NCBI RefSeq assembly: GCF_016432865.1 | Contig: NC_067400.1 | Span: 611,816,001-611,880,000 of the forward strand | Source: Antechinus flavipes | Taxonomy: Eukaryota | Direction of reading: 5' to 3' | DNA: 64,000 bases | Shown: piece by piece, positions 50,970-63,982 of the stretch | Layout: each line of letters begins with the position of its first letter | Numbering within the stretch: the first letter of the stretch is position 1 | Position numbers and translations under genes: made by a program | The notes under the pieces: model-generated | What the model saw: only the letters and a program-made list of their open reading frames with translations | What the model was told of the DNA's origin: nothing | Database searches by the model: none

Positions 50970-51240
50970 CTCGGCTCCCGGCGCCCTCCCGACGGTCCCG
51001 GCGTCGATCGGAACGAGCGGAGAGACCGTTAGCCGTCGCAACGGCCGCTCGCTCCGAACCGCCGCGGGAAAAGCCGGCGCTCCCGGGCGATTGGCTGGGT
51101 TTCGCTCCAAGGCCGGCCAATGGCTGAGTGGCCGGTCCCGCGGCCAGCCAATCAGAGGCCAGGGGAGGACCTGGGTGTATCGCGTCACTGGAGGGTGGTG
51201 GCGGAGAGGGGAAAGCCGAGCTAGCCCAAATAACGAGGAA
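50970..51240 (-). promoter_or_regulatory. WDR62: WDR62 promoter: three CCAAT boxes plus an E2F site
   Basis: ATTGG 51090-51094, CCAAT 51117-51121 and 51148-51152 (27-31 bp apart); TTTCCCGC (E2F consensus, minus strand) at 51064-51071; CpG island. This layout is typical of cell-cycle genes. Confidence 0.7.
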
Positions 51241-51309
51241 GGGGTTTCACGCTCCTCCACGGCCTCCTCTACTTTTTTTTTAAATTTTATTTGAAAATTT
51301 ATGAGTGTG

Positions 51310-51721
51310 CAACAACGATACTGTTTGGGGATGTATTCTGATGGAAGTGGACCTCTTCGAGAAAGAGAGCCTTAATTGATCAAAGATGGACAGAAGCAGC
51401 TACACCCAGAGAAAGAACACTGGGAAATGAATATAAACTGCTTACATTTTTGTTTTTCTTCCCGGGTTATTTCTACCTTCTGAATCCAATTCTCCCTGTG
51501 CAACAAGAGAACTGTGCGGTTCTGCACACATATATTGTATCTAGGATATACTGCAACCCATTCAACATGTAAAGGACTCTTGTCATCTGGGGGAAGGGGT
51601 GGAGGGAGGGAGGGGAAAAATCGGAACAGAAGTGAATGCAAGGGATAATGCTGTAAAAAATTACCCTGGCATGCGTTCTATCAATAAAAAGTTATTAATT
51701 AAATAAATAAATAAATAAAAA
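51310..51721 (+). mobile_element. Young 5'-truncated L1 insertion with a perfect 17-bp TSD
   Basis: L1 3'UTR (ctgtgcaacaagagaactgtgcggttctgcacacatatattgtatctagg...aataaaaagttatt) and (TAAA)n tail; TSD gaaaatttatgagtgtg at 51293-51309 and 51722-51738. Confidence 0.9.
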
Positions 51722-52019
51722 GAAAATTTATGAGTGTGTTTTTATGTTACAAACATTCACAGATTACCCCGACTCCACGAGAGGTCTTTTATAACAAAAT
51801 AAAACAAGTGAAACTAACAACATAGGGATCTCTTCTGCAGTCCCCCCCCACCCCCACCTGTCTTTTTTGTTATTTAAAGTGAAGAGAAATCCATTTTCTC
51901 TCCCTCCCACTCTCAGCTCACTGGAAACCAGAGAAATATGTCTCCCTCTACACCCTAAATGTATCATCTCTGTGATATGTTTCATCATTCATCCTCTGAA
52001 CCATCTTAAATCAATCAAT

Positions 52020-55000
52020 CAAAATACATTTATTAAGCATTTTTTTTTATTTTTTTATTTTCAAAATATATGCAAAGATAGTTTTCAACATTCACCTTTG
52101 CAAATCCTTGTGTTCCAAATTTTTCCTCTCCCTAGCCAACAAGTAATGTAATATATGTTAAACATAGTGCACACTTATTAAGCACTAAAGTGCCAGGTTA
52201 ATAGACTAATGGCTATTAAACTCTGGGATGAAAAAAAAAAAGCAATTTTACCGTTTTCAGTTGTTTGTTTTGACTGTCGATATCAGATTCTCAAAATTGA
52301 TGGCCATATTTTTAGTTCCTCAGCAATTGCTGTTGGGGGGTTTTGCCACTTCAAAAAAGAGCTGCTATAAATATCTTTGTACATAAGAGCCCTTTTCTTT
52401 TTTCTTTGATCTCTTTGAGTATAGGCCTAACAGTGTTATAGCTAGTCTGTGCCTTTTAGATCCACCACCCATGTTGCAATGTGCCTGTTTTTCCACAGCC
52501 CGTCCAACATTTTTTTTTTTTTTTTTGGTCCTATTTTCCATACGATGAATGTAAGAATGTAAGGCAGAATCTCAGAATTGTTTTAATTGGAATTCCTTTA
52601 ATTATATGGAACATTCCCCATCTCCTGCTCCCAACATGGCTAATTAAAGTTTATTCTGCTTAAAAATTGACTTCATATACTTAGACTATTTTATCAATTG
52701 GACAATGATCCTTATTCTTATAAATTTAAATCCATTCCTTTTATGTTTTAAAAATAAGACCTTTATTAAATGACATAATACTTGTAAAGTGCTTAGAATA
52801 AGGTCTGACTCATAGTAGGTGCTTAATAAATGCTAATTCTCCTTCCTTTCTCTTTATCAGAGAAACTTGCTGCAAAGATTTTCTCCAGATGTTTCCATTT
52901 TAATTTTAACTATTCGATTTGTTTATGCAAAACTTTTTCAAGTTTTATGTATTTTATTTTCTCCGATACTCTTTATTCATTGTTTGCTCATGAATTTTTT
53001 TTCTATCCATAGACTTGATAGGAAATTTATTTTTAGATCTGTTCCCATTTGTAATTGATAGTTATGTAAAGTTATAAGGTATTGGTCTAAATTTAATGCC
53101 TTTCATGCTGCTGTCTAATTCTCCCAACAGTTTTTGTCAGATGTTAAGTGCTTATCCCAGGAACTGGGGTCTTTACCTTTATTGAAAACTAAAGTATTAG
53201 ATATATTACTTAATCTATTCCACCGATTGAATTTTTCTTTTTACCAATGCCAAATTGTTTGAGGAATCACTGCTTTGTAGTATACTTTGAAATGTGGTCG
53301 TTAGGCCTCCTTGATTCCTATTTCTTTTCATTATTTCTCTTGAAATTTTTGACATTCTCTTTTTGCCCCATAAATATTTATTTTAATTTTCAAATTTGAA
53401 TTCTCTTCCTCTCCCTGCACTTCCTCTTCATCCATTGAGAAGGCAAGAAAAATAAAACCCAATACAAAACAAATTTCTCTATTAGCCACTTCTGAAAGAG
53501 GGAAGAAGAAAGAGAAACACAGAAACACAGAGACAGAAAGAAGAAAAAGGAGGAGAGGAAGGGAGGAAGAGGAAGAGAGAGAGAGGAAAGAAGGGAAGAA
53601 AATATGCTATAATCTGCAATTTTAAGTCTTAGCTCCCTATCATGAGGTAGATAGCATGTGTCATCATGAGTCCTTTGGGATTGTGATTAGTTATTGTGTT
53701 TAATCAAAATTACTCTTTCAAAATTGATTATCTGTAGATTATTATTCTTATTGTGTAAATCCTTCCTCTAGTTCTCAATTCATTTTGCAATGGTTCAAAT
53801 GAGTCTTTTGATCATTTTTTTTTTTAACAGGACATTTGTATTCTATTACATTTATGTACCATAATTTGTTCAGCCATTTCACAATCGATGGAGATTCCTT
53901 TAGGTTCAAATACTTTTCCATGACAAAAAGAGAGGCAATAAATATTTTTGTATATATGGGACCTTTTGTTCTGTCTTTGATATCTTTGGTTTGTAGACCT
54001 AAAACCTAGAAGAGGTCGTTGCTGGGTCAAAAGATATGCACAATTTCATAGCTTTTGGGGCATACTTGTATATGCTTGCCTCTAACAGTTGGACCAGTTG
54101 GACCAGCTATACCAACAGTGCCTTAGTATACTTTTCCCCCCATAATCCCTCTAGCATACAGTTTCCCATTTCCATACACATTTCCATTAGCCAAATTGAT
54201 GGATGTTAGTGGTATCTCATAGTTGTGTTAATTTTCATTTTTCTAATTGTTATTTAGAGCAATTTTTATGTGGTTATTGACAGATTTGATTTCTTTCTCT
54301 GAAAACTGCCTAATCATATCTGTTTAGCATTTATCAACTGAGGAATGGTCTTTTTCTTGTAAATTTTACTCACTTTCCTAAATATCTTAGAAATGAGATC
54401 ATTATGAGAGAAATATGCTATAAAAGATTCCCCTTTTCCTGCTTTCTCCCCACTAATTTTAGCTGCATTTGGTTTTGTTTGTGCAAAATTTTTAAAAATT
54501 TTATGTCATCAAAATTATTTAATTTAGAACACAAGATTTTGTAAGGGTGAATATTGAAAATTATCCATATATATATAAATATATAAAAAAGCTTTAATTT
54601 AAAAAATTATTTATTTAACCTTTTGTGAACCTCTCTATTTCATTTTACAGCTCTCAGATTGGTTAAGAGGATAGGAATATTGTACATGGCAACAAGATTA
54701 TACAATGATCAATTCTGATAGATGTGGCTCTTCAATACTGAGGTGATTCAGGCCAGTTCCAATATACTGTGGTGGAGAGAGCCATGTGCATCCAGAGAGA
54801 GAACTAAGGGGACTGAGTATAGATCACAACCTGGTGTTTTCACTTTTGTTGTTTTGTTGCTTGCTTGTTTTTTTCCTCCCTCTTTTCCCTTGTTGATGAT
54901 TTTTCTTGTGCAGCATTATAAATGTGGAAATATTTTTAGAAGAATTGCACATGTTTAACTTATATTGGATTACTTGTTGTCTATGGGAGGGATGAGGGAG

Positions 55001-56200
55001 GGAGAAAAATATGGAACCCAAGGTTTTGCAAGTGTGAATGATGAAAACCTCTCTACTTTTCATTTAATCATAAACTCCCTATCAATAAATCTTACCTGTA
55101 ATTTCCTCTATATTCTACCAATTTGCTTATGATGTCCCCCTTTATGTCTAAATCGTGTACCCATTTTGAAGTCTCTTGCCATATAATGTGAGATGTTAGT
55201 CTATGCCTTGATTCTGCCAGATTACTCTTCAGTTTTCCCAATAGTTTTTTTTTTTTAATCATATAAAAAATTCTATGGCTTTATCAAAGATTAGGTTACT
55301 TTGCTGATTTGTTTTTGCATACGGTATCTAATCTGTTTCAATGATTAACTACTCTATTTCTTACCCGGTACCAAACTGTTTGATGATTACAGTTTGATGA
55401 TTATACTTAGTAGTATAGTTTGAGATCTAATACTGCTTGACCTACTTTCTTGCCATTTTTCCCACTGTTTCTCTTAATATTTGTGCCTTTTTTGTTCTTC
55501 CAGATAAATTCTGGCATTTTTTTTTTTCTGGTTCCATAAAACAATCCTTGATAGTTTGGCATAAAATAATATAATGGCTAACATTTATGTAGTATCTGCT
55601 ACATAAATTTTAGCTGCATGTCATCAAAATTATTTAATTTAGAACACAAGATTTTGTAAGAGTGAATACTGAAAATTATCCATGTATATATTTTTAAAAT
55701 AAAAAACTTTAATTAAAATTTTTTTTCATTTAACCTACGAATCTATTTCACTTTACACTATCAGCACTATTGCTAAGTGCTTCAAAAATAGTATTTCTTT
55801 TGATTCTCACAATAATCTTGGGAAATAGGTGCTATTATTATCCCCATTTTATAGAGCAACAAGTGCCTTGTCTAGGCCCAAATAGTTAGTTTGTGTCTAT
55901 TACTCCCTGATTCTAAGCCCTGGAGCTCTATCCATAAGCCAATTATCTTTACTTTTAGTAATTAATTTAGGTTTATTGTAGGGTTGAACCTGGCTCATCC
56001 TACCCAAGGGCAATTAACATTAACAATTTCCCACTTAATTACCTTTGGGGTTTTTTTTTTGGTGAGCCTTTGTAGTTGTATAGTTCATGTGTATATCTTG
56101 GAACATGGAATCCCAAGTATTTTCTACATTCTAGAGTAATTTTAAATAGTTTCTCTTTTTAGCTCTTCCTGCTGAGTTTTATATAGAAACTTCTCTAATG
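52020..56200. mobile_element. Cluster of old, nested L1 fragments (mostly minus strand) between WDR62 and THAP8
   Basis: AT-rich; reverse L1 3' ends (about 52030-52150, about 53400), reverse ORF2 remnants, and plus-strand 3' ends at about 54520-54610, about 54670-55050 and about 55635-55725. Confidence 0.75.
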
Positions 56201-56559
56201 CTGGGAGGCCTGGAAGATAAGGTAAAGCCTTGGGAAACAAAGGTTGGTCAGACCATATCCCAAAGGCAATTTGGTTTCATCTCACAGAGAGTAAAGATCA
56301 AAACAGAAGTCATAGAATTATTGTTGGAGAGGTTTAAGGTTAATAGTCACCAAACTTGACCTAGTCTCCTCACTTTTATAAATCTTATTTTGCTTATCTA
56401 GAAATTGTGGAAATTAAGACTTACCTACCAACCTCATACGGGCATTCATGGGATGATAGCATTTAGCTGGAAGGGAACTTCTAAGGTCATTTAATCCACC
56501 CACATCCTCCTTTCATGGGTTGCTAGGTATCCAAGAGGAGAGAATTCTGGGACCCTAGA

Positions 56560-56720
56560 CTGGTCCTAGCTGGTGCGATCCTGGGCAACTTAACCTGTTA
56601 GCCTCCATTTCCTCATCTGTCAAATGAGCCGGAGAAGGAAATGACAAACCAATCCACTTCTATGCCAAGAAAACCTTAAAGAGCATCATGATGAGTCAGA
56701 TACTACTTACTGAACAATAG
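56560..56720 (+). mobile_element. MAR1-like CORE-SINE
   Basis: ctgggcaacttaacctg...ttcctcatctgtcaaatgagccggagaaggaaatgacaaacc...gccaagaaaacc...atgagtcagatactac. Confidence 0.7.
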
Positions 56721-59099
56721 TAAATAACAATCTTGTCTTGTAGAGGAAAAAATTGAAATGATTGCTTGCCCGGTACTGCCTGAAATCAAATGATTTCATT
56801 TGAACTTCACAAAAACCTCCTGAAATAAGTGTTCCTGGTCTCAGAAAAGAGATAACAAAAAAGAATGGCATTTATGTAGTGCTTTTGAAATTTTATGTTT
56901 TAATTAACTTTAATTCCAATTTTAATTTAAATTCATCCATGCAAAACTTTTTACATGTATTATTTTATTTGATCCTCATAACAACTCTGTGAAGGAGATG
57001 CTATCATCGTTCCCATTTTCTACAAGAGGAAACTTAGGGTGAGAAAGAAAGGTTAAATGACAAGGTCACAGAATCAGAGGGGGGATTGGAAAGCCCATTT
57101 TACAGATGGGGAGACTGAGATTCAAATGACTTGTGCTAAATTCCTAGCATCTGAGGAGTATTTTGAATCTGTCTCTCTCGATTTCAAATCCAGCATTCTT
57201 TCCCCATTCTAGGCACTGGGCTAAGTAAGCACTGGGGATACAAAGGTAAAAAAAGCTTCAAGGAGCTCACATTCTAATAGGAGAAACATGCAAATGATTT
57301 TTTAAAATAGCTTTCTATTAACAAAGCATATGCATGGGTCATTTTTCAAGACTGACTCTTGCAAAACCTTCTGTTCCAACTTTTCCCCTCCTTCCCCCGG
57401 CCCCCTTCCCTAGATGACATGCAAATATTCACTAGCCATTTTTCAGACTCCATGGACCACAGCAATCAAGGCCTTTCTACCTACACTATATCCTGAAGTC
57501 TGTCCTTGGTCATGCTCATTGTATTCCAGACCCCATCTCTCTCTCTCATCCTCTGCCATCCTTTCTCCTTTTGCCTTCAGTCTTTCCCCAACCTCATTAT
57601 GTGGCTAAAATATATAAACTTCAGCTTCGGTATTTGATCTTTCGGTGAAAAACTGCCTGAATCCATTTCTCTAAGTATTGACCCATTTGATCTCTTCACT
57701 TGCTGTCCAAAGGACTCTCAAAAGCCTTCTGCAGCAACAGTTCACTCAGTTTTCACTTCCCTGACTCTCACAGCCCTACATTTAGTGTCACACTAGCTAT
57801 GGACAGAAAAAAAGAGCCCCGTCCATGTAGTCAGAATGAACTGGCTTCCAATGTTGTTCAGACTTGTACTGATTGAATGACTGGTCAAATCACTGCTTCT
57901 TCCTGGCTCGCCAAATCCTCGGCAACAAAGGGTCCAACTCGGTCTCCTAAGTCCTCTTGGATTCTAACTCTGGAATTGTATGGGAGGTAATCTCAGGGAA
58001 AGTAATTAGTAGCTGCCAGGATCCAGAACGAGCTCCCGCAGAGGAAGCCATCTGAGCCGTCTCAAGGAAGGACCTTGGGGAAACGAAGGCTGAGGTGACA
58101 AGTATCTTCCAGAAGGATGAATCTAGGTGCAATGAGAGAACCGCCAACCCGACACTTCCTGGAGGGTCGTGAGGTTCATTTTGGGACCAATTTATCCGAA
58201 ATGGATGGTTCCTAATCATTTGTTGGATGAATCTGAACCCTAGCTTTGTGCCAAGTGCATATTAATAAATCCTTCCTTCCGAGAATTCTGGGATGTTACG
58301 GAATAAGGAGTAATTAAAGTCCGTTGCACTAATGGGGTTTTTTTCCCAAGAATTCTCGACGTATAATTGAATACAGACGGATGCATAGGGTAGATATATG
58401 CAAGTTTACATTCTAGTTGGAAGTGGGTGGGTGGGCAGCTGGAAATAATACTTACAAATTCTATGCTTCACACAACTTTACGGTGGTATATATTTACATG
58501 TAATGATTATAAATAGTATCTAGAAACTTGAAGTTAGTCTTGAAAGTGTTTGGCGTGAGTCGTTCACGAGAAGTTCATAATTAAACCTAGAAAGGACGTG
58601 CTGTTATCCCTATTTTACAGATGAGGAAACTAAGTGACTTATACAGGTGGTAAGCGTTTCCGAAGGGGAATTTGAACTCGGATCTTCTCCGCCCGAGTTC
58701 CTGCCCCTCTCCCCAAGCTTCATCTCCTTAAGCTGCTTGGGTTAGTATTTATGCCATTTACGAAGCTTCAAAACTGCTTCTATTTCCAGGACCCCGTCCG
58801 CCCCTTTACTCCATTAATAAACTTTTCTCCACGCTAAATTCGGACCGTTAAGAAAGCTTTCGATTCGGACAAAAGAAAGTCCCGTTTAGTGGGGAAAGTA
58901 TTCAGGGATTTAGAGATCTTTTCTTTTCCCAAATTAGATTGTAAACTCCCCGAGGGCAGAAACTCGGATTTCCTCTCGCTTACGGAGCACTCTTGTCGCT
59001 CTTCTCTTCCCCCTCGGCACTAGCAAATCCTAGGCACAGAAAGGGGAAGAGGCCGATCGCACCCCGCCCCTCGGTTTTTGAGCCGGCGCCAAGTGCATT

Positions 59100-59460
59100 C
59101 CTCTTTCTTTTGACACGCGCAGTTTTTGCGCATGCCCGGGCGTCCAGCTACAACTGCGCACGCTCCCGGGCTCTTCCCTTACCCTACCCCGGCACATGAC
59201 GGGGCCGGAGTGGAGTCACGTGACCAGGGCGGCGCGTAGAACCAGGCCGACCCGGGAATCCCGCAGAGGCCCGAGGGAGGGAGCCAGACAGGGCCGGGAC
59301 AGAGATCGGGGCCATGCCCACGTCTTCTTTGGCTCCGCCCTGCCTCAACACTGCTGGCCTACTCGGCACCTACAACCTCCGCCTCGGCTTTTCTACAAGT
59401 GAGCGTCACTGTCAGGGAAGGGCGAACGGGGCGCTCCGGCATCATGACTCTGACGTCAAG
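59100..59460 (+). promoter_or_regulatory. THAP8: THAP8 CpG-island promoter
   Basis: NRF1-like GCGCATGCCC 59128-59137; perfect palindromic E-box GTCACGTGAC 59215-59224; perfect CRE TGACGTCA 59451-59458 just inside the intron. Confidence 0.6.
59314..59398 (+). pseudogene. THAP8: Degenerate remnant of THAP8 exon 1 (N-terminal part of the THAP zinc finger)
   Basis: Reads MPTSSLAPPCLNTAGLLGTYN versus human MPKYCRAPNCSNTAGRLGADN; ends TTCTACAA|GTGAGC like the human donor. The first Zn-ligand Cys is Ser here, and 2 extra nt before TTCTACAA shift the frame. Confidence 0.7.
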
Positions 59461-59619
59461 ACGCCGTGGTGACGTTGGTCCCCACCCCCTCCCGAAAAAA
59501 GAGCGAAGCCTCAAGGGCGGGGCCAAGGGAGGTGTGGGCGGGGCTTCCCCTTTCTCTCCACGCCCCTAGATTAAGAGGCGGGGGGAGAGAGAGGAGTCCT
59601 GGGATTCCTTGGCGAGAGG

Positions 59620-59930
59620 TGGAAGGAGTCCCAGAGGCCACCAGTCCCATCCCCTCTCTCTACAGTGGAGGAAACTGAGGCCCAGGCAGAAGTGACTCGT
59701 CCAAGGTCACCCCGGGAGTAAGTCGGTTGAACCGGGGTTCCCACACAGGTCTTGTGGCTGAACCCAGTCCTCCCCTTTACCCCCCGGCCCAGCAGGAGTC
59801 ACAGCCCCTCCCCTATAATTAGAGGGAGGAGGGTCCTGGCTCCCTTCTGGAACTGGAAGGCCGGAGAGGTCCTCCAGCCCGACGCCCTCGTTGTACAGAT
59901 GGGGACACTGAGGCCCAGGGCGGGCAGGGT
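59620..59930 (+). mobile_element. Two GC-shifted MIR/CORE-SINE copies in THAP8 intron
   Basis: ...tacagtggaggaaactgaggcccaggcagaagtgactcgtccaaggtcac... and ...ggaaggccggagaggtcctccagcccgacgccctcgttgtacagatggggacactgaggcccagg. Confidence 0.65.
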
Positions 59931-60054
59931 CGGGTCCAAGGCGGGGCCAGCACTCGCTCCGGGGAGTCGGCGTCGTGCCCCGGCCGCGCAGCCCCTGGCC
60001 TGCCCCGGGCAGGGCTCGAGGTCCTGATAGGCGGCGCCTCTGTGTGTGTTTCAG

Positions 60055-60970
60055 GAACGCAGACGGCTGGGACCTGACGGCTGGATCTCTGCCGGAGCAG
60101 CCCTGAAGGCGACCGCGACCGTGGCCTCCTGGGGGGCCCCCGCGCTCCCGGGGACGGCGTACCTGGAAGCCTGGCCGGCCCTTCCCCTCGAGGCGCGGCC
60201 CCTGCCCCCCGTGACCGTGGTGTCGTCGGCGCTCGTCACCCCCATCGTCTCCACGCTCCCCATCGTGTGCCACACGGCCGCCGCGGCCTCTGCCGAGGCT
60301 GAGCGGGCCGAGCCGGAGGAGCCCGACGGTGCGGCCGAGGAGCCGTCGGGGGAGCCGTCCGGGGCGGCCCCGCGGGACGAGCACGCCTACCACCGTGCCC
60401 GGCTGGAGCCCGAGGCCGGGCTGGACGGGCTGGTGGCGGCGCTGCAGCGCAAGGTACGGGGGCTGCAGCAGCGGCAGCGGCGGCACCGCGCGCGCCTCGG
60501 CGCCCTCGAGGGACTGGTGCTGCAGCTGCGACGGGACCACCTGCTGTCACACGAGCGCCTGCGGCTGCTGGGCGCGGTAAGCCTGCGGGGCAAGGTGGGG
60601 GATGGGTCGGGGACCGAGGGGGACACAACTGGGGGGCGGGTCCCGGGACATAGGGACACGGGGGGGGGGGGCGCAGAACACAGAAAGGTGCACAGCGTGG
60701 GGGAGGGCAGGCTGCGGGACACGGAGACATGGGGGGGCACAACGTGGGGGGACGGGCCGCAGAACCCTGACGGGTGCACGGCGGGAGGGGGGGCCTCCAG
60801 TGGTTGGGCTGTACCCCACTCACCACCCTCTTCCCTTCTTCCCGCAGACATGCCTGCCCGGGGGCCCCGCACGCCCCGAGCCCGCGGGGGCTGGCGCCGT
60901 GACCATCGTGTGCGGGGAGCAGCCCGCTGGCACCGTCCTCTACACGCTAACATCTGCCCCCTCCCCCTGA
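60055..60970 (+). CDS. THAP8: THAP8 C-terminal exons (HCF-1-binding motif + coiled coil), no THAP domain
   Basis: Exons 60055-60576 (ttcag|GAA...GCG|gtaag) and 60848-60970 (cgcag|ACA...TGA), open in frame. LVAALQRKVRGLQQRQRRHRARLGALEGLVLQL matches human THAP8 VLGALQRRVRRLQRCQERHQAQLQALERLAQQL; VTIVCG matches FTIICG; the syntenic position between WDR62 and CLIP3 fits. Start codon and coding status unresolved. Confidence 0.75.
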
Positions 60971-61023: not shown

Positions 61024-61029
61024 AATAAA
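61024..61029 (+). terminator. THAP8: THAP8 poly(A) signal AATAAA
   Basis: 54 nt after the stop codon. Confidence 0.7.
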
Positions 61030-61702: not shown

Positions 61703-63982
61703 ATGACGAAGACGGACGCCGCAGCGCTGCCCCCGGAGGAGGAAGAGGAGGAAGAGGAGGAGGAGGAGGAGCCCCTGCCAGAAGCTCCCAGCCCCATCCC
61801 GGAGCCCAGGCAGAAGCCCGTGGTGCACCCCTCCGCCCCGGCCCCGCTGCCCAAGGACTACGGTAAACACGCCCGAGGTGTGGCTTAGCGGGGAACCCCG
61901 GGAGCCGCCGTTCTCCCAACCCAGATCCTCGGGAGAGCCTGAGGGGGTCAGTCTTGTGACCCAGCGGGATCCATCCTGGATCTGAGGGATCCGACCTAGT
62001 GGGAATCCAGAAGGATCCAGCCCCGAGAGCTCAGGGGATCTGGTGGCTCTGCGCCTGGGGGGCTCAACTTGGCCATTTTTGAAAAGTGTTTGGTGACAGA
62101 AGGGCACTTGGCTCTTGTAGGTTCCCTTTGGAATCCGGAGCATTTGATGGTTTAAAGGGCCCTCCTGAGGAGGGGCCCCAGGGGACCGCACATACCCCCC
62201 CTTTAAGAGCCCCTCCTTTTGGTGGGTCAGAAGGCAGGAAGGGGGGCTGAGGGGGGTCCAGGTGAGCATTCTCAGTCTGCAGGGTGACCCCTGGGGACCC
62301 TGGCAGGTGGAAGCAGACTCTGGATCTGGGGGTACGTTACCTTGGCCAAGAGCTGACCTGCCTCTCTCTCCCATCAGCCTTCACTTTCTTTGACCCCAAT
62401 GACCCAGCCTGTCAGGAGATTCTGCTGGACCCACGGACCACCATCCCCGAGCTCTTTGCCATCATCCGCCAGTGGGTGCCCCAGGTTCAGCACAAGATTG
62501 ACGTCATTGGCAATGAGGTGGGTGGAGGCCGCGGGTGGGGTGCGGGGGGTCCAGGACGGCCCTTCCCGGGGTGACAGCGGAACCCTTCCCCAGATCCTGC
62601 GCCGTGGATGTCACGTGAATGACCGGGACGGGCTCACAGACATGACCCTGCTCCACTACGCCTGCAAAGCCGGCGCGCACGGCGTTGGTGAGTGGGCTGG
62701 GCCCCCGGAGCCCCGGGAGCCATCTTTGAGTTCCTAAGATCCCAGGCCCTCGAGCTCCCTAATGCCAGCTCTCCTTAAGTTCTCGCCCCACCCCCGGCCT
62801 GTGCCCACCCTGCCAACCTCCCCACAGGAGACCCGGTGGCCGCCGTCCGCCTGTCGCAGCAGCTGCTGGCCCTGGGGGGGGACGTGACCCTGCGGAGCCG
62901 CTGGACAAACATGAACGCGCTCCATTACGCCGCGTATTTCGACGTCCCCGATCTCATCCGCGTGCTGCTAAAGGGGGCCCGGCCGCGAGGTATGGGGGAA
63001 GGCCCCGGCCTGTGGGGGAGGGAGGCCCAGACTGGTGGGGGGAGGGAGGCCCTGGCCTGTGGGGGAGGGAGGCCCAGACTGGTGGGGGGAGGGAGGCCCA
63101 GACTGGTGGGGGGGAGGCCCCGGCCTGTGGGGGAGGGAGGCCCAGACTGGTGGGGGGGAGGCTCAGATTGGTGGGGGGAGGGAGGCCCCGGCCTGTGGGG
63201 GAGGGAGGCCCAGACTGGTGGGGGGAGGGAGGCCCAGACTGGTGGGGGGAGGGAGGCCCAGACTGGTGGGGGGAGGGAGGCCCAGACTGGTGGGGGGGAG
63301 GCCCAGACTGGTGGGGGGAGGGAGGCCCAGACTGGTGGGGGGTGGGAGGCCCAGACTGGTGGGGGGTGGGAGGCCCAGACTAGTGGGGGGGAGGCCCCGG
63401 CCTGTGGGGGAGGGAGGCCCAGACTGGTGGGGGGTGGGGGGGAGTCTGGGACCCGAGGAGTCTCTGGCTACCCTGACCGGGCCCCTTCCTGCCCCCTCCT
63501 CCCTCTCCCCTCCTAGTGGTGAATTCGACTTGCAGTGACTTCAACCACGGCTCAGCCCTGCACATCGCAGCGTCCAACCTGTGCCTCGGGGCTGCCCGCT
63601 GCCTCCTGGAGCACGGGGCCAACCCTGCTCTGCGGGTACGTGAGCTGGCCCTAGGCCTGGCGCCCGGCTGCCCCCTGGGCCCGTCTCCCAGAAGCTGGGG
63701 GGGGGGTGCAGCCCGCGCCCCCTGACCACGGCTGTCCCCCCGCAGAACCGCAAGGGCCAAGTCCCGGCCGAGGTCGTCCCGGACCCCATGGACATGTCCC
63801 TGGACAAGGCTGAGGCCGCCCTCGTGGCCAAGGAGCTGAGGACGCTGCTGGAGGAGGCCGTGCCCCTGTCCTGCGCCCTCCCCAAGGTCACGTTGCCCAA
63901 CTACGACAACGTCCCGGGCAACCTCATGCTCAGTGCCCTCGGCCTTCGGCTCGGGGACCGGGTCCTGCTGGACGGCCAGAAG
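61703..63982 (+). CDS. CLIP3: CAP-Gly domain-containing linker protein 3 (CLIPR-59), 5' part; continues beyond the window
   Basis: Exons 61703-61862, 62378-62517, 62594-62687, 62828-62989, 63517-63635, 63746-63982, phases closing. Protein MTKTDAAALPPEEEEEE...KPVVHPSAPAPLPKDYAFTFFDPNDPACQEIL..., ankyrin repeats (MTLLHYACKAG, NALHYAAYFD, SALHIAASNL), ...LGLRLGDRVLLDGQK. Confidence 0.97.
62992..63435 (+). repeat. G-rich 24-bp minisatellite (about 18 copies) in a CLIP3 intron
   Basis: Unit gggaggcccagactggtgggggga with variants ggccccggcctgtggggg; fills most of the intron between 62989 and 63517. Confidence 0.92.

Follow-up and report, generated by a model that had tools for sequence, protein, structure and literature searches.

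THAP8 is among the least understood of the THAP genes, and the locus considered here raises the question of what a member of this family can become once its DNA-binding zinc finger has gone. The locus lies in a window of 64,000 nucleotides from the marsupial Antechinus flavipes (assembly GCF_016432865.1, contig NC_067400.1, positions 611,816,001 to 611,880,000 of the forward strand), and all coordinates below are counted from the first letter of this window. Its final 13 kb match chromosome record CM028219.1 of A. flavipes assembly GCA_016432865.2 with 100% identity. An initial annotation, made from the sequence alone, had described a THAP8 gene without its THAP domain that would be either a pseudogene caught mid-decay or a THAP-less adaptor or decoy for HCF-1. 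The loss of the domain and the retention of an HCF-1-binding motif (HBM) next to a coiled coil have both held up, whereas the pseudogene option fails for the two C-terminal exons, whose dN/dS (omega) is 0.19. It is likely that the locus represents a marsupial THAP8 orthologue that lacks the THAP finger and whose C-terminal half has been kept by selection as a DNA-blind HCF-1-binding and dimerisation protein. Marsupial THAP8 is not mentioned in the literature searched.

The Antechinus flavipes locus is the marsupial orthologue of THAP8. It is flanked by WDR62 upstream and CLIP3 downstream, it contains a C-terminal half homologous to that of other THAP8 proteins with the same exon junction, and its exon 1 is still recognisable. 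The two neighbours, judged by their Pfam families, are also found at the THAP8 loci of Sarcophilus, Sminthopsis, Dromiciops, wombat and tammar, and in the rattlesnake THAP8 and WDR62 are adjacent and arranged head to head. The DNA comparison covers four species, Antechinus, Sarcophilus, Sminthopsis and Dromiciops, with Petaurus, wombat and tammar entering as proteins only; the nine public THAP8 models come from eight species, namely these seven and the koala.

The part of the gene that has been retained comprises the following features.

60055-60576, plus strand: ancestral exon 3, of 174 codons
60157-60177, plus strand: AYLEAWP, in exon 3
60211-60270, plus strand: the VTVVSSALVTPIVSTLPIVC motif, in exon 3, to which an acidic run, the HBM and the greater part of the helix also belong
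60379-60390, plus strand: the HCF-1-binding motif E-H-A-Y, with a D before it at 60376-60378
60421-60576, plus strand: a long helix, or coiled coil, predicted for residues 123-174 of what exons 3+4 encode, with two further codons in exon 4
60454-60455, plus strand: internal GT (AAG/GTACGG), in all four aligned species
60848-60970, plus strand: last coding exon (exon 4), 40 codons and TGA, with the conserved tail AVTIVCGEQ...LYTL
61024-61029, plus strand: AATAAA poly(A) signal, read directly, with flanks also conserved in four species

The two exons are thus open for 214 codons (174+40) with good splice sites and a poly(A) signal, as had been noted initially, and their translation is identical to the exon 3-4 part of public model P0006. 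The splice sites (tttcag/G, GCG/gtaagc and cccgcag/A) are conserved in four species, and the junction between exons 3 and 4 falls at the same place and in the same phase as in the snake gene, reading LLGA/TCLP here and LLEV/ACLQ there. The D-E-H-A-Y sequence (60376-60390) does stand just before the coiled coil: EHAY is invariant in eight marsupial models and falls within a stretch of predicted disorder, about ten residues before the helix. That helix of 54 residues (123-176, pLDDT 94-99) is the sole confident element of the AlphaFold2 model, the remainder of which is predicted to be disordered. Pfam finds only weak coiled-coil matches in the exons, to ATG16 and ZapB, and a sequence search of the PDB with the marsupial profile returned nothing meaningful. 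Isoform X2 of Petaurus uses the internal GT as a donor, so that the helix is skipped in frame and the HBM kept; if real, this isoform would be a monomeric HCF-1 binder. Intron 3 (60590-60800) is G-rich and highly variable in length: it measures approximately 270 nt here and ~55 nt in Dromiciops, while its counterparts in Sarcophilus and Sminthopsis are several hundred nt longer than the Antechinus one.

Exons 3 and 4 are protein-coding and are under purifying selection. Antechinus and Dromiciops are 89% identical in exon 3 and 84% in exon 4 compared to 63-73% in unconstrained parts of the introns, and the only indels in exon 3 measure +6 and -12 nt, whereas intron 3 differs by hundreds of bases. 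The variable sites are distributed 21/23/41 over codon positions 1/2/3, and neither stops nor frameshifts occur in exons 3-4 of the four genomes or the eight models. By the Nei-Gojobori method (NG86) the reading frame itself has a dN/dS of 0.27-0.50, against 1.05-1.5 for the two remaining sense frames. Maximum-likelihood (ML) estimates of omega were obtained with a GY94-F3X4 likelihood script of our own and compared with omega = 1 by likelihood ratio tests (LRT), for four species unless stated.

Exons 3+4, four species: omega 0.19, LRT p 2e-13
HBM plus helix (codons 103-170): omega 0.03, LRT p 4e-12
Exon 4: omega 0.24, LRT p 6e-4
Exons 3+4, three dasyurids only: omega 0.17, LRT p 3e-7
Exon 3 shifted +1 (control): omega 1.5, LRT p 0.2
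Exon 3 shifted +2 (control): omega 2.9, LRT p 6e-5

In frame 0 exon 3 alone gives an omega of 0.17, and in the part comprising the HBM and the helix the synonymous sites change (pS 0.18) while the replacement sites do not (pN 0.03).

These values have to be set against the possibility that the locus is a unitary pseudogene or a non-coding RNA, dead since the loss of the THAP domain, with a frame that is open only by virtue of its 77% G+C. Openness alone is indeed not significant, as about 8% of shuffled sequences stay open for 214 codons, which bears out the caution of the initial annotation that GC-rich DNA remains open by chance; in addition the frame runs on through intron 3 for 335 codons, there are long open reading frames (ORFs) on the opposite strand, and in dasyurids the frame contains no AUG while the N-termini of the public models disagree. 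What such a reading does not accommodate is the low omega, both overall and within the dasyurids, next to values of 1.5 and 2.9 in the shifted frames, the restriction of exon indels to 6 and 12 nt beside introns full of indels, exon identities 16-26 points above the introns, and a similarity to reptile and fish THAP8 that still reaches an E-value of 1e-28. The frame-specific omega of 0.19, the exclusively in-frame indels and the conservation of splice sites, stop codon and poly(A) signal across three marsupial orders together lead us to reject a pseudogene for exons 3-4, and for the locus such a reading is improbable. An omega near 1 and frame-breaking mutations, the marks of a unitary pseudogene, are confined to the THAP-coding part. 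The initial annotation had proposed that a dN/dS near 1 with lineage-specific stops would denote a plain pseudogene; across the four marsupials compared dN/dS is low, and their genomes contain no such stops.

The N-terminal half of the gene has had a different fate. Its remains comprise three features.

59100-59480, plus strand: conserved CpG-island block, enclosing the remnant of exon 1 and ~80 nt at the start of intron 1
59314-59398, plus strand: decayed THAP8 exon 1, 85 nt, with an ATG at 59314, reading MPTSSLAPPCLNTAGLLGTYNLRLGFST
59399-60054, plus strand: intron 1, 656 nt and gap-free, with conserved donor GTGAGC and acceptor TTTCAG

Exon 1 is recognisable but decayed, as had been stated initially. 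Its product aligns without gaps with residues 1-28 of THAP8 from birds and snakes (MPTSSLAPPC.NTAG compared to MPKYCRAPxCSNxAG...RRLSFYK), its donor GT at 59399 (AA/GTGAGC) lies at the place homologous to the snake donor, and the Dromiciops copy is matched by a THAP domain query in tblastn with an E-value of 0.007. The first ligand of the C2CH zinc finger, C5, is replaced by serine while the second cysteine is retained. A +2 frameshift is real as well, but it does not follow codon 21 as first supposed; it results from a TT insertion in codon 26 (within 59389-59392) at the end of the exon, where the marsupial sequence AGC TT[TT]C TAC AA/gt (85 nt) corresponds to AGC TTC TAC AA/gt (83 nt) in the snake. 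The ATG, the C5S replacement and the exon length of 85 nt are common to the four aligned genomes, and the tammar model carries the same MPTSSLAPPCPNTAG...RRLSFST.

The ATG at 59314 and its context are invariant in the four marsupials, though the ORF that it opens is only 29-36 codons long, and we read exon 1 as a leader exon with a conserved donor. Identity between Antechinus and Dromiciops amounts to 78-91% in the surrounding block as opposed to 58% upstream of it and 63-73% in the rest of intron 1. The block contains TGCGCATGC, two copies of CACGTGAC, TGACGTCA and GC boxes, all read directly, and is promoter-like, these motifs being putative promoter elements.

Nothing resembling the exon that should follow was found. 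In the snake THAP8 gene exon 1 has 83 nt, exon 2 has 193 nt and encodes residues 28-92 with the remainder of the finger, and exon 3 starts in phase 0. Pfam THAP gives no match at E<=10 among ten ORF pieces of the intron 59399-60054, nor in exons 3-4 at the same threshold, and tblastn with six THAP domains fails to find exon 2 in the whole 64-kb window (with 59658-59694 masked), the exon-1 remnant being the only match, or in the loci of Dromiciops, Sarcophilus and Sminthopsis including 10 kb on either side. The initial statement that nothing resembling THAP exon 2 lies within this gap-free interval therefore stands. The Pfam THAP domain is likewise found in none of the nine public marsupial models, although the bird controls in the same scan were positive, bird and snake THAP8 scoring 3e-17 to 1e-18. 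Marsupial THAP8 thus lacks what defines the domain (PF05485), a C-X2-4-C-X35-53-C-X2-H arrangement together with an AVPTIF box.

The THAP finger was lost long ago, and its absence is not due to faulty assembly. Exon 1, intron 1 and exon 3 can be aligned throughout in five independent assemblies from four species, none of which contains N in this region, and the Antechinus intron aligns end to end with those of Dromiciops, Sarcophilus and Sminthopsis, which disposes of the misassembly that had initially been considered as a cause. As the defects are common to Dasyuromorphia, Diprotodontia and Microbiotheria, the loss predates the divergence of these orders; word searches with marsupial THAP8 surfaced no opossum or monotreme model. 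A DNA-binding domain could in principle still be supplied by an exon located elsewhere, by one left unassembled or by an alternative first exon, and it is true that the koala and wombat models begin approximately 8-10 kb upstream at the bidirectional promoter of WDR62 and that the tammar model has an extra exon of 77 nt. The upstream pieces are nevertheless promoter-like, with a CCAAT box, and not THAP-like, tblastn detects no second THAP piece in the interval between WDR62 and CLIP3 or within 10 kb on either side in the three other marsupials, and exon 1 itself carries the C5S replacement and the frameshift in all five assemblies, each with the same gap-free intron 1. With no THAP match in any of the nine models, the persistence of a hidden THAP exon is extremely improbable.

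What remains is a module of considerable age. A profile built from the exon 3-4 parts of five marsupial models and searched against 1.8 billion representatives found 66 proteins, with best E-values of 1e-28 to 1e-14 for those of the tuatara, viperid THAP8, coelacanth, tarpon, stork THAP8 and others, and the majority of the full-length matches have an N-terminal Pfam THAP domain. The homologues share a fixed order of AYFETIP (AYLEAWP in Antechinus), TVLSSAL..PIVSTLPIVS (VTVVSSALVTPIVSTLPIVC in Antechinus), an acidic run, EEH[RGCSK]Y[HYN], the helix and the tail. The helix follows the consensus LQKKVKVLQQRHRRH..KL.A[ML]E..V.QLR..NL.SEE[KR]L.LLE, its L, V, Q and R positions being conserved across vertebrates, and the tail follows TVAIIC.E....VY.

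The HBM has the consensus D/E-H-x-Y, and the literature lists human THAP8 as lacking it, in agreement with the initial annotation. The marsupial EHAY aligns with EEHRYH, EEHGYH, EEHCYH and DEHSYY of non-mammalian homologues. D/E-H-x-Y occurs in tuatara, snake, caecilian, coelacanth, gar, teleosts, manta and elephant shark, but neither in the bird sequences nor in the THAP8 of sloth, chinchilla and armadillo. The motif is therefore not a marsupial novelty; since it occurs in reptiles, an amphibian and both ray-finned and cartilaginous fishes but not in birds and eutherians, the marsupial motif represents a retained ancestral state. On this distribution the HBM was lost independently in eutherians and in birds rather than gained in marsupials, and its absence from human THAP8 is a secondary loss. 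The ancestral amniote THAP8 had a canonical HBM beside the coiled coil, and the gnathostome one probably did too. For amniotes this rests on the snake gene with its WDR62 synteny, while the fish proteins are named 'THAP5-like' and may descend from a THAP5/8 ancestor.

Several observations weigh against the view that the gene encodes a translated, finger-less THAP8, and the most conspicuous of them concern the start of translation. No ATG occurs in exon 3 in any frame and exon 4 contains a single one that is out of frame, and in dasyurids there is no AUG in frame with the exon 3-4 ORF. Exon 1 shows no frame-specific constraint; its old ATG at 59314 does not share the frame of exon 3, and after splicing its ORF ends at TGA 60075-60077, or in Dromiciops at a TAA formed at the splice junction. 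No alternative splice donor or acceptor that would bring the old ATG into frame with exon 3 was found by eye. A second ATG lies upstream of it.

59132-59239, plus strand: ORF of ATG 59132, in the frame joining exon 3, closed by TAG 59237-59239

This TAG is common to the three dasyurids and is CAG in Dromiciops, and the frames between this ORF and ~59300 differ among species. The public models arrive at an AUG along six different 5' routes, which are unrelated to one another and in part implausible.

Antechinus: MN, a 6-nt coding-sequence piece at 52545
Sminthopsis: MDGKKGTVHA
Sarcophilus: MAPRPSV...
Dromiciops: MSNLLS..., via an 83-nt intron
Petaurus and tammar: MCMYPVTT..., from an ATG in GCGCATGC that is homologous to ATG 59132
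Koala and wombat: MAERPVPRPANQRP..., from the CCAAT-box region of the WDR62 promoter

Several of these models depend on tiny coding-sequence pieces or very short introns, the 77-nt middle exon of the tammar model has no counterpart in the window, and the N-termini of the nine models, from RefSeq and Ensembl, are probably artefacts by which annotation pipelines have made good a missing AUG. Two segments near the WDR62 start, 51120-51173 and 51717-51785, are conserved between dasyurids and Dromiciops and serve as coding 5' exons in the koala and wombat models. The first of them holds a CCAAT box (RPANQRP corresponds to ...GCCAATCAG...) and is more likely to be promoter sequence than coding sequence.

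Conservation at the protein level starts at approximately codon 16 of exon 3. Two near-cognate codons with a Kozak-like context that are invariant in the four species, CUG 60103 (gcagccCUGa) and GUG 60121 (gcgaccGUGg), are located just upstream of this point and after the stop of the old-ATG ORF. The likeliest mechanism that we can propose for dasyurids, though itself less likely than not, is initiation at one of them after the short old-ATG ORF.

The same caution extends to expression and to the selection analysis itself. Sequencing runs labelled as RNA contain only ~0.2 of the sampled words, and no transcript-derived (Logan) protein is present in the clusters containing marsupial THAP8, which is a mild argument for low expression; DNA-like runs from three organisms contain 0.75-0.87 of the words and provide weak independent support for the assembled sequence. 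ML estimates of omega under F3X4 may run low at 77% GC. Finally the synonymous sites of codons 15-73 (60100-60273, AALKAT...PIVSTLPIVC) are near-invariant between dasyurids and Dromiciops, with a pS of 0.04, so that part of the conservation acts on DNA or RNA, and the antisense frame that shares the wobble positions yields a similar dN/dS of ~0.5.

These last two points, along with the plainly non-coding nature of the conserved block 59100-59480, would be expected if exon 3 were conserved as a regulatory element within the CpG island, acting as enhancer, promoter or insulator on WDR62, on CLIP3 or on an antisense transcript. This is very improbable as an account of the exons as a whole, for in the HBM and helix it is the replacement sites and not the synonymous sites that are held constant, the indels preserve the frame, and the sense product has homologues with the same order of motifs while the antisense product has none. 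RNA structure was considered as a cause of the frozen synonymous sites and rejected, the fold being no better than those of shuffled sequences (z-score 0.40).

The preferred reading of a finger-less THAP8 implies the following course of events. Before the split of Microbiotheria, Dasyuromorphia and Diprotodontia the 193-nt exon with the third cysteine, the histidine and the AVPTIF box was lost and exon 1 decayed through C5S and the +2 frameshift. Exon 1 would have persisted as a conserved leader inside the CpG-island promoter, spliced to what had been exon 3. Ancestral exons 3 and 4 encode a mostly disordered polypeptide of ~200 residues with the AYxExxP and SSAL..PIVSTLPIV motifs, an acidic run, the canonical HBM EHAY and, after a gap of some ten residues, a helix of 54 residues that is of the THAP7/8/11 coiled-coil type. 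We infer from the sequence that this product is translated, binds HCF-1, dimerises and has a regulatory role. Unable to bind DNA itself, it would contact the Kelch domain of HCF-1 through the HBM, its helix would homodimerise or pair with partners of the THAP11 type, and it would act as an adaptor or competitor in HCF-1/THAP complexes.

The known behaviour of THAP proteins provides the background to this proposal. THAP proteins recruit HCF-1 by means of an HBM placed beside a coiled coil. Human THAP8 forms homodimers as well as heterodimers with THAP11, and although it has no HBM it co-precipitates with HCF-1. A 2026 review describes the orthology of THAP8 as weak and the HBM as lacking, with HCF-1 still co-precipitated. 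Possession of an HBM is no guarantee of binding, as THAP5 has one but failed in co-immunoprecipitation.

Eutherian THAP8, as represented by the human protein and the sloth, chinchilla and armadillo models, resembles its marsupial counterpart in the position of the locus between WDR62 and CLIP3, in the MP..C..N.AG start of exon 1, in the helix (LQR[RK]V..LQ.R..RH.A.L..LE.L..QL) and in the tail (..TI[IV]CG). It keeps the THAP finger and lacks D/E-H-x-Y, whereas marsupial THAP8 shows the reverse, and it also lacks the SSAL..PIVSTLPIV motif in the alignment. Sauropsid THAP8 and the amphibian and fish 'THAP5-like' proteins possess the full C-terminal module in the same order as in marsupials, with the snake sharing the exon 3/4 junction, but they differ in having an N-terminal Pfam THAP domain and a linker that is 150-250 residues longer, and the birds lack the HBM. 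THAP11 (Ronin) and THAP7 are like the marsupial product in that their HBM is situated directly N-terminal to a dimerising coiled coil, and the helices of THAP7, THAP8 and THAP11 are grouped together in the literature. Unlike the marsupial product, which has no recognisable DNA-binding part, THAP11 and THAP7 bind DNA via the THAP domain and tether HCF-1 to promoters.

An analogous arrangement is offered by the Id proteins among the basic helix-loop-helix factors, which have a dimerisation surface without a DNA-binding part and can titrate their partners. The likeness is one of function only, there being no homology to marsupial THAP8, whose pairing with THAP proteins would be the corresponding activity.

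The surroundings of the gene in the window are as follows.

40-51 kb, minus strand: WD40 exons and first coding exon of WDR62
From ~62.3 kb, plus strand: ankyrin and CAP-Gly exons of CLIP3

Between the start of WDR62 and the THAP8 remnant lie about 8 kb of A+T-rich DNA (51300-59000, 26-45% G+C). The spacing between the two genes in the snake is ~600 nt, and the marsupial remnant has a CpG island of its own. Within a CLIP3 intron, at 62980-63500, there is a G-rich tandem repetition that gives long repetitive ORFs in several frames (GGGREAQTGGG..., RPRLVGGG...). The sole N run of the window covers 349 bases at 1115-1463.

The marsupial gene amounts to a natural separation of function: across an entire mammalian clade, the half of a THAP protein concerned with cofactor binding and dimerisation has outlived the DNA-binding half by tens of millions of years. 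As the C-terminal half has been under selection without the finger, the C-terminal module has a function of its own. A more far-reaching version, in which the therian lineages have split the ancestral THAP8 in opposite ways, the eutherians keeping the finger and the marsupials the motif and helix, and in which the marsupial finger-less HCF-1 adaptor is made without an AUG from a near-cognate start behind a conserved upstream ORF, is rather doubtful as a whole. A conserved AUG-less ORF behind a conserved upstream ORF nevertheless makes a clean case in which to test non-AUG initiation. A THAP8 that lacks the finger and bears the HBM is in any event an addition to the THAP family as it is known.

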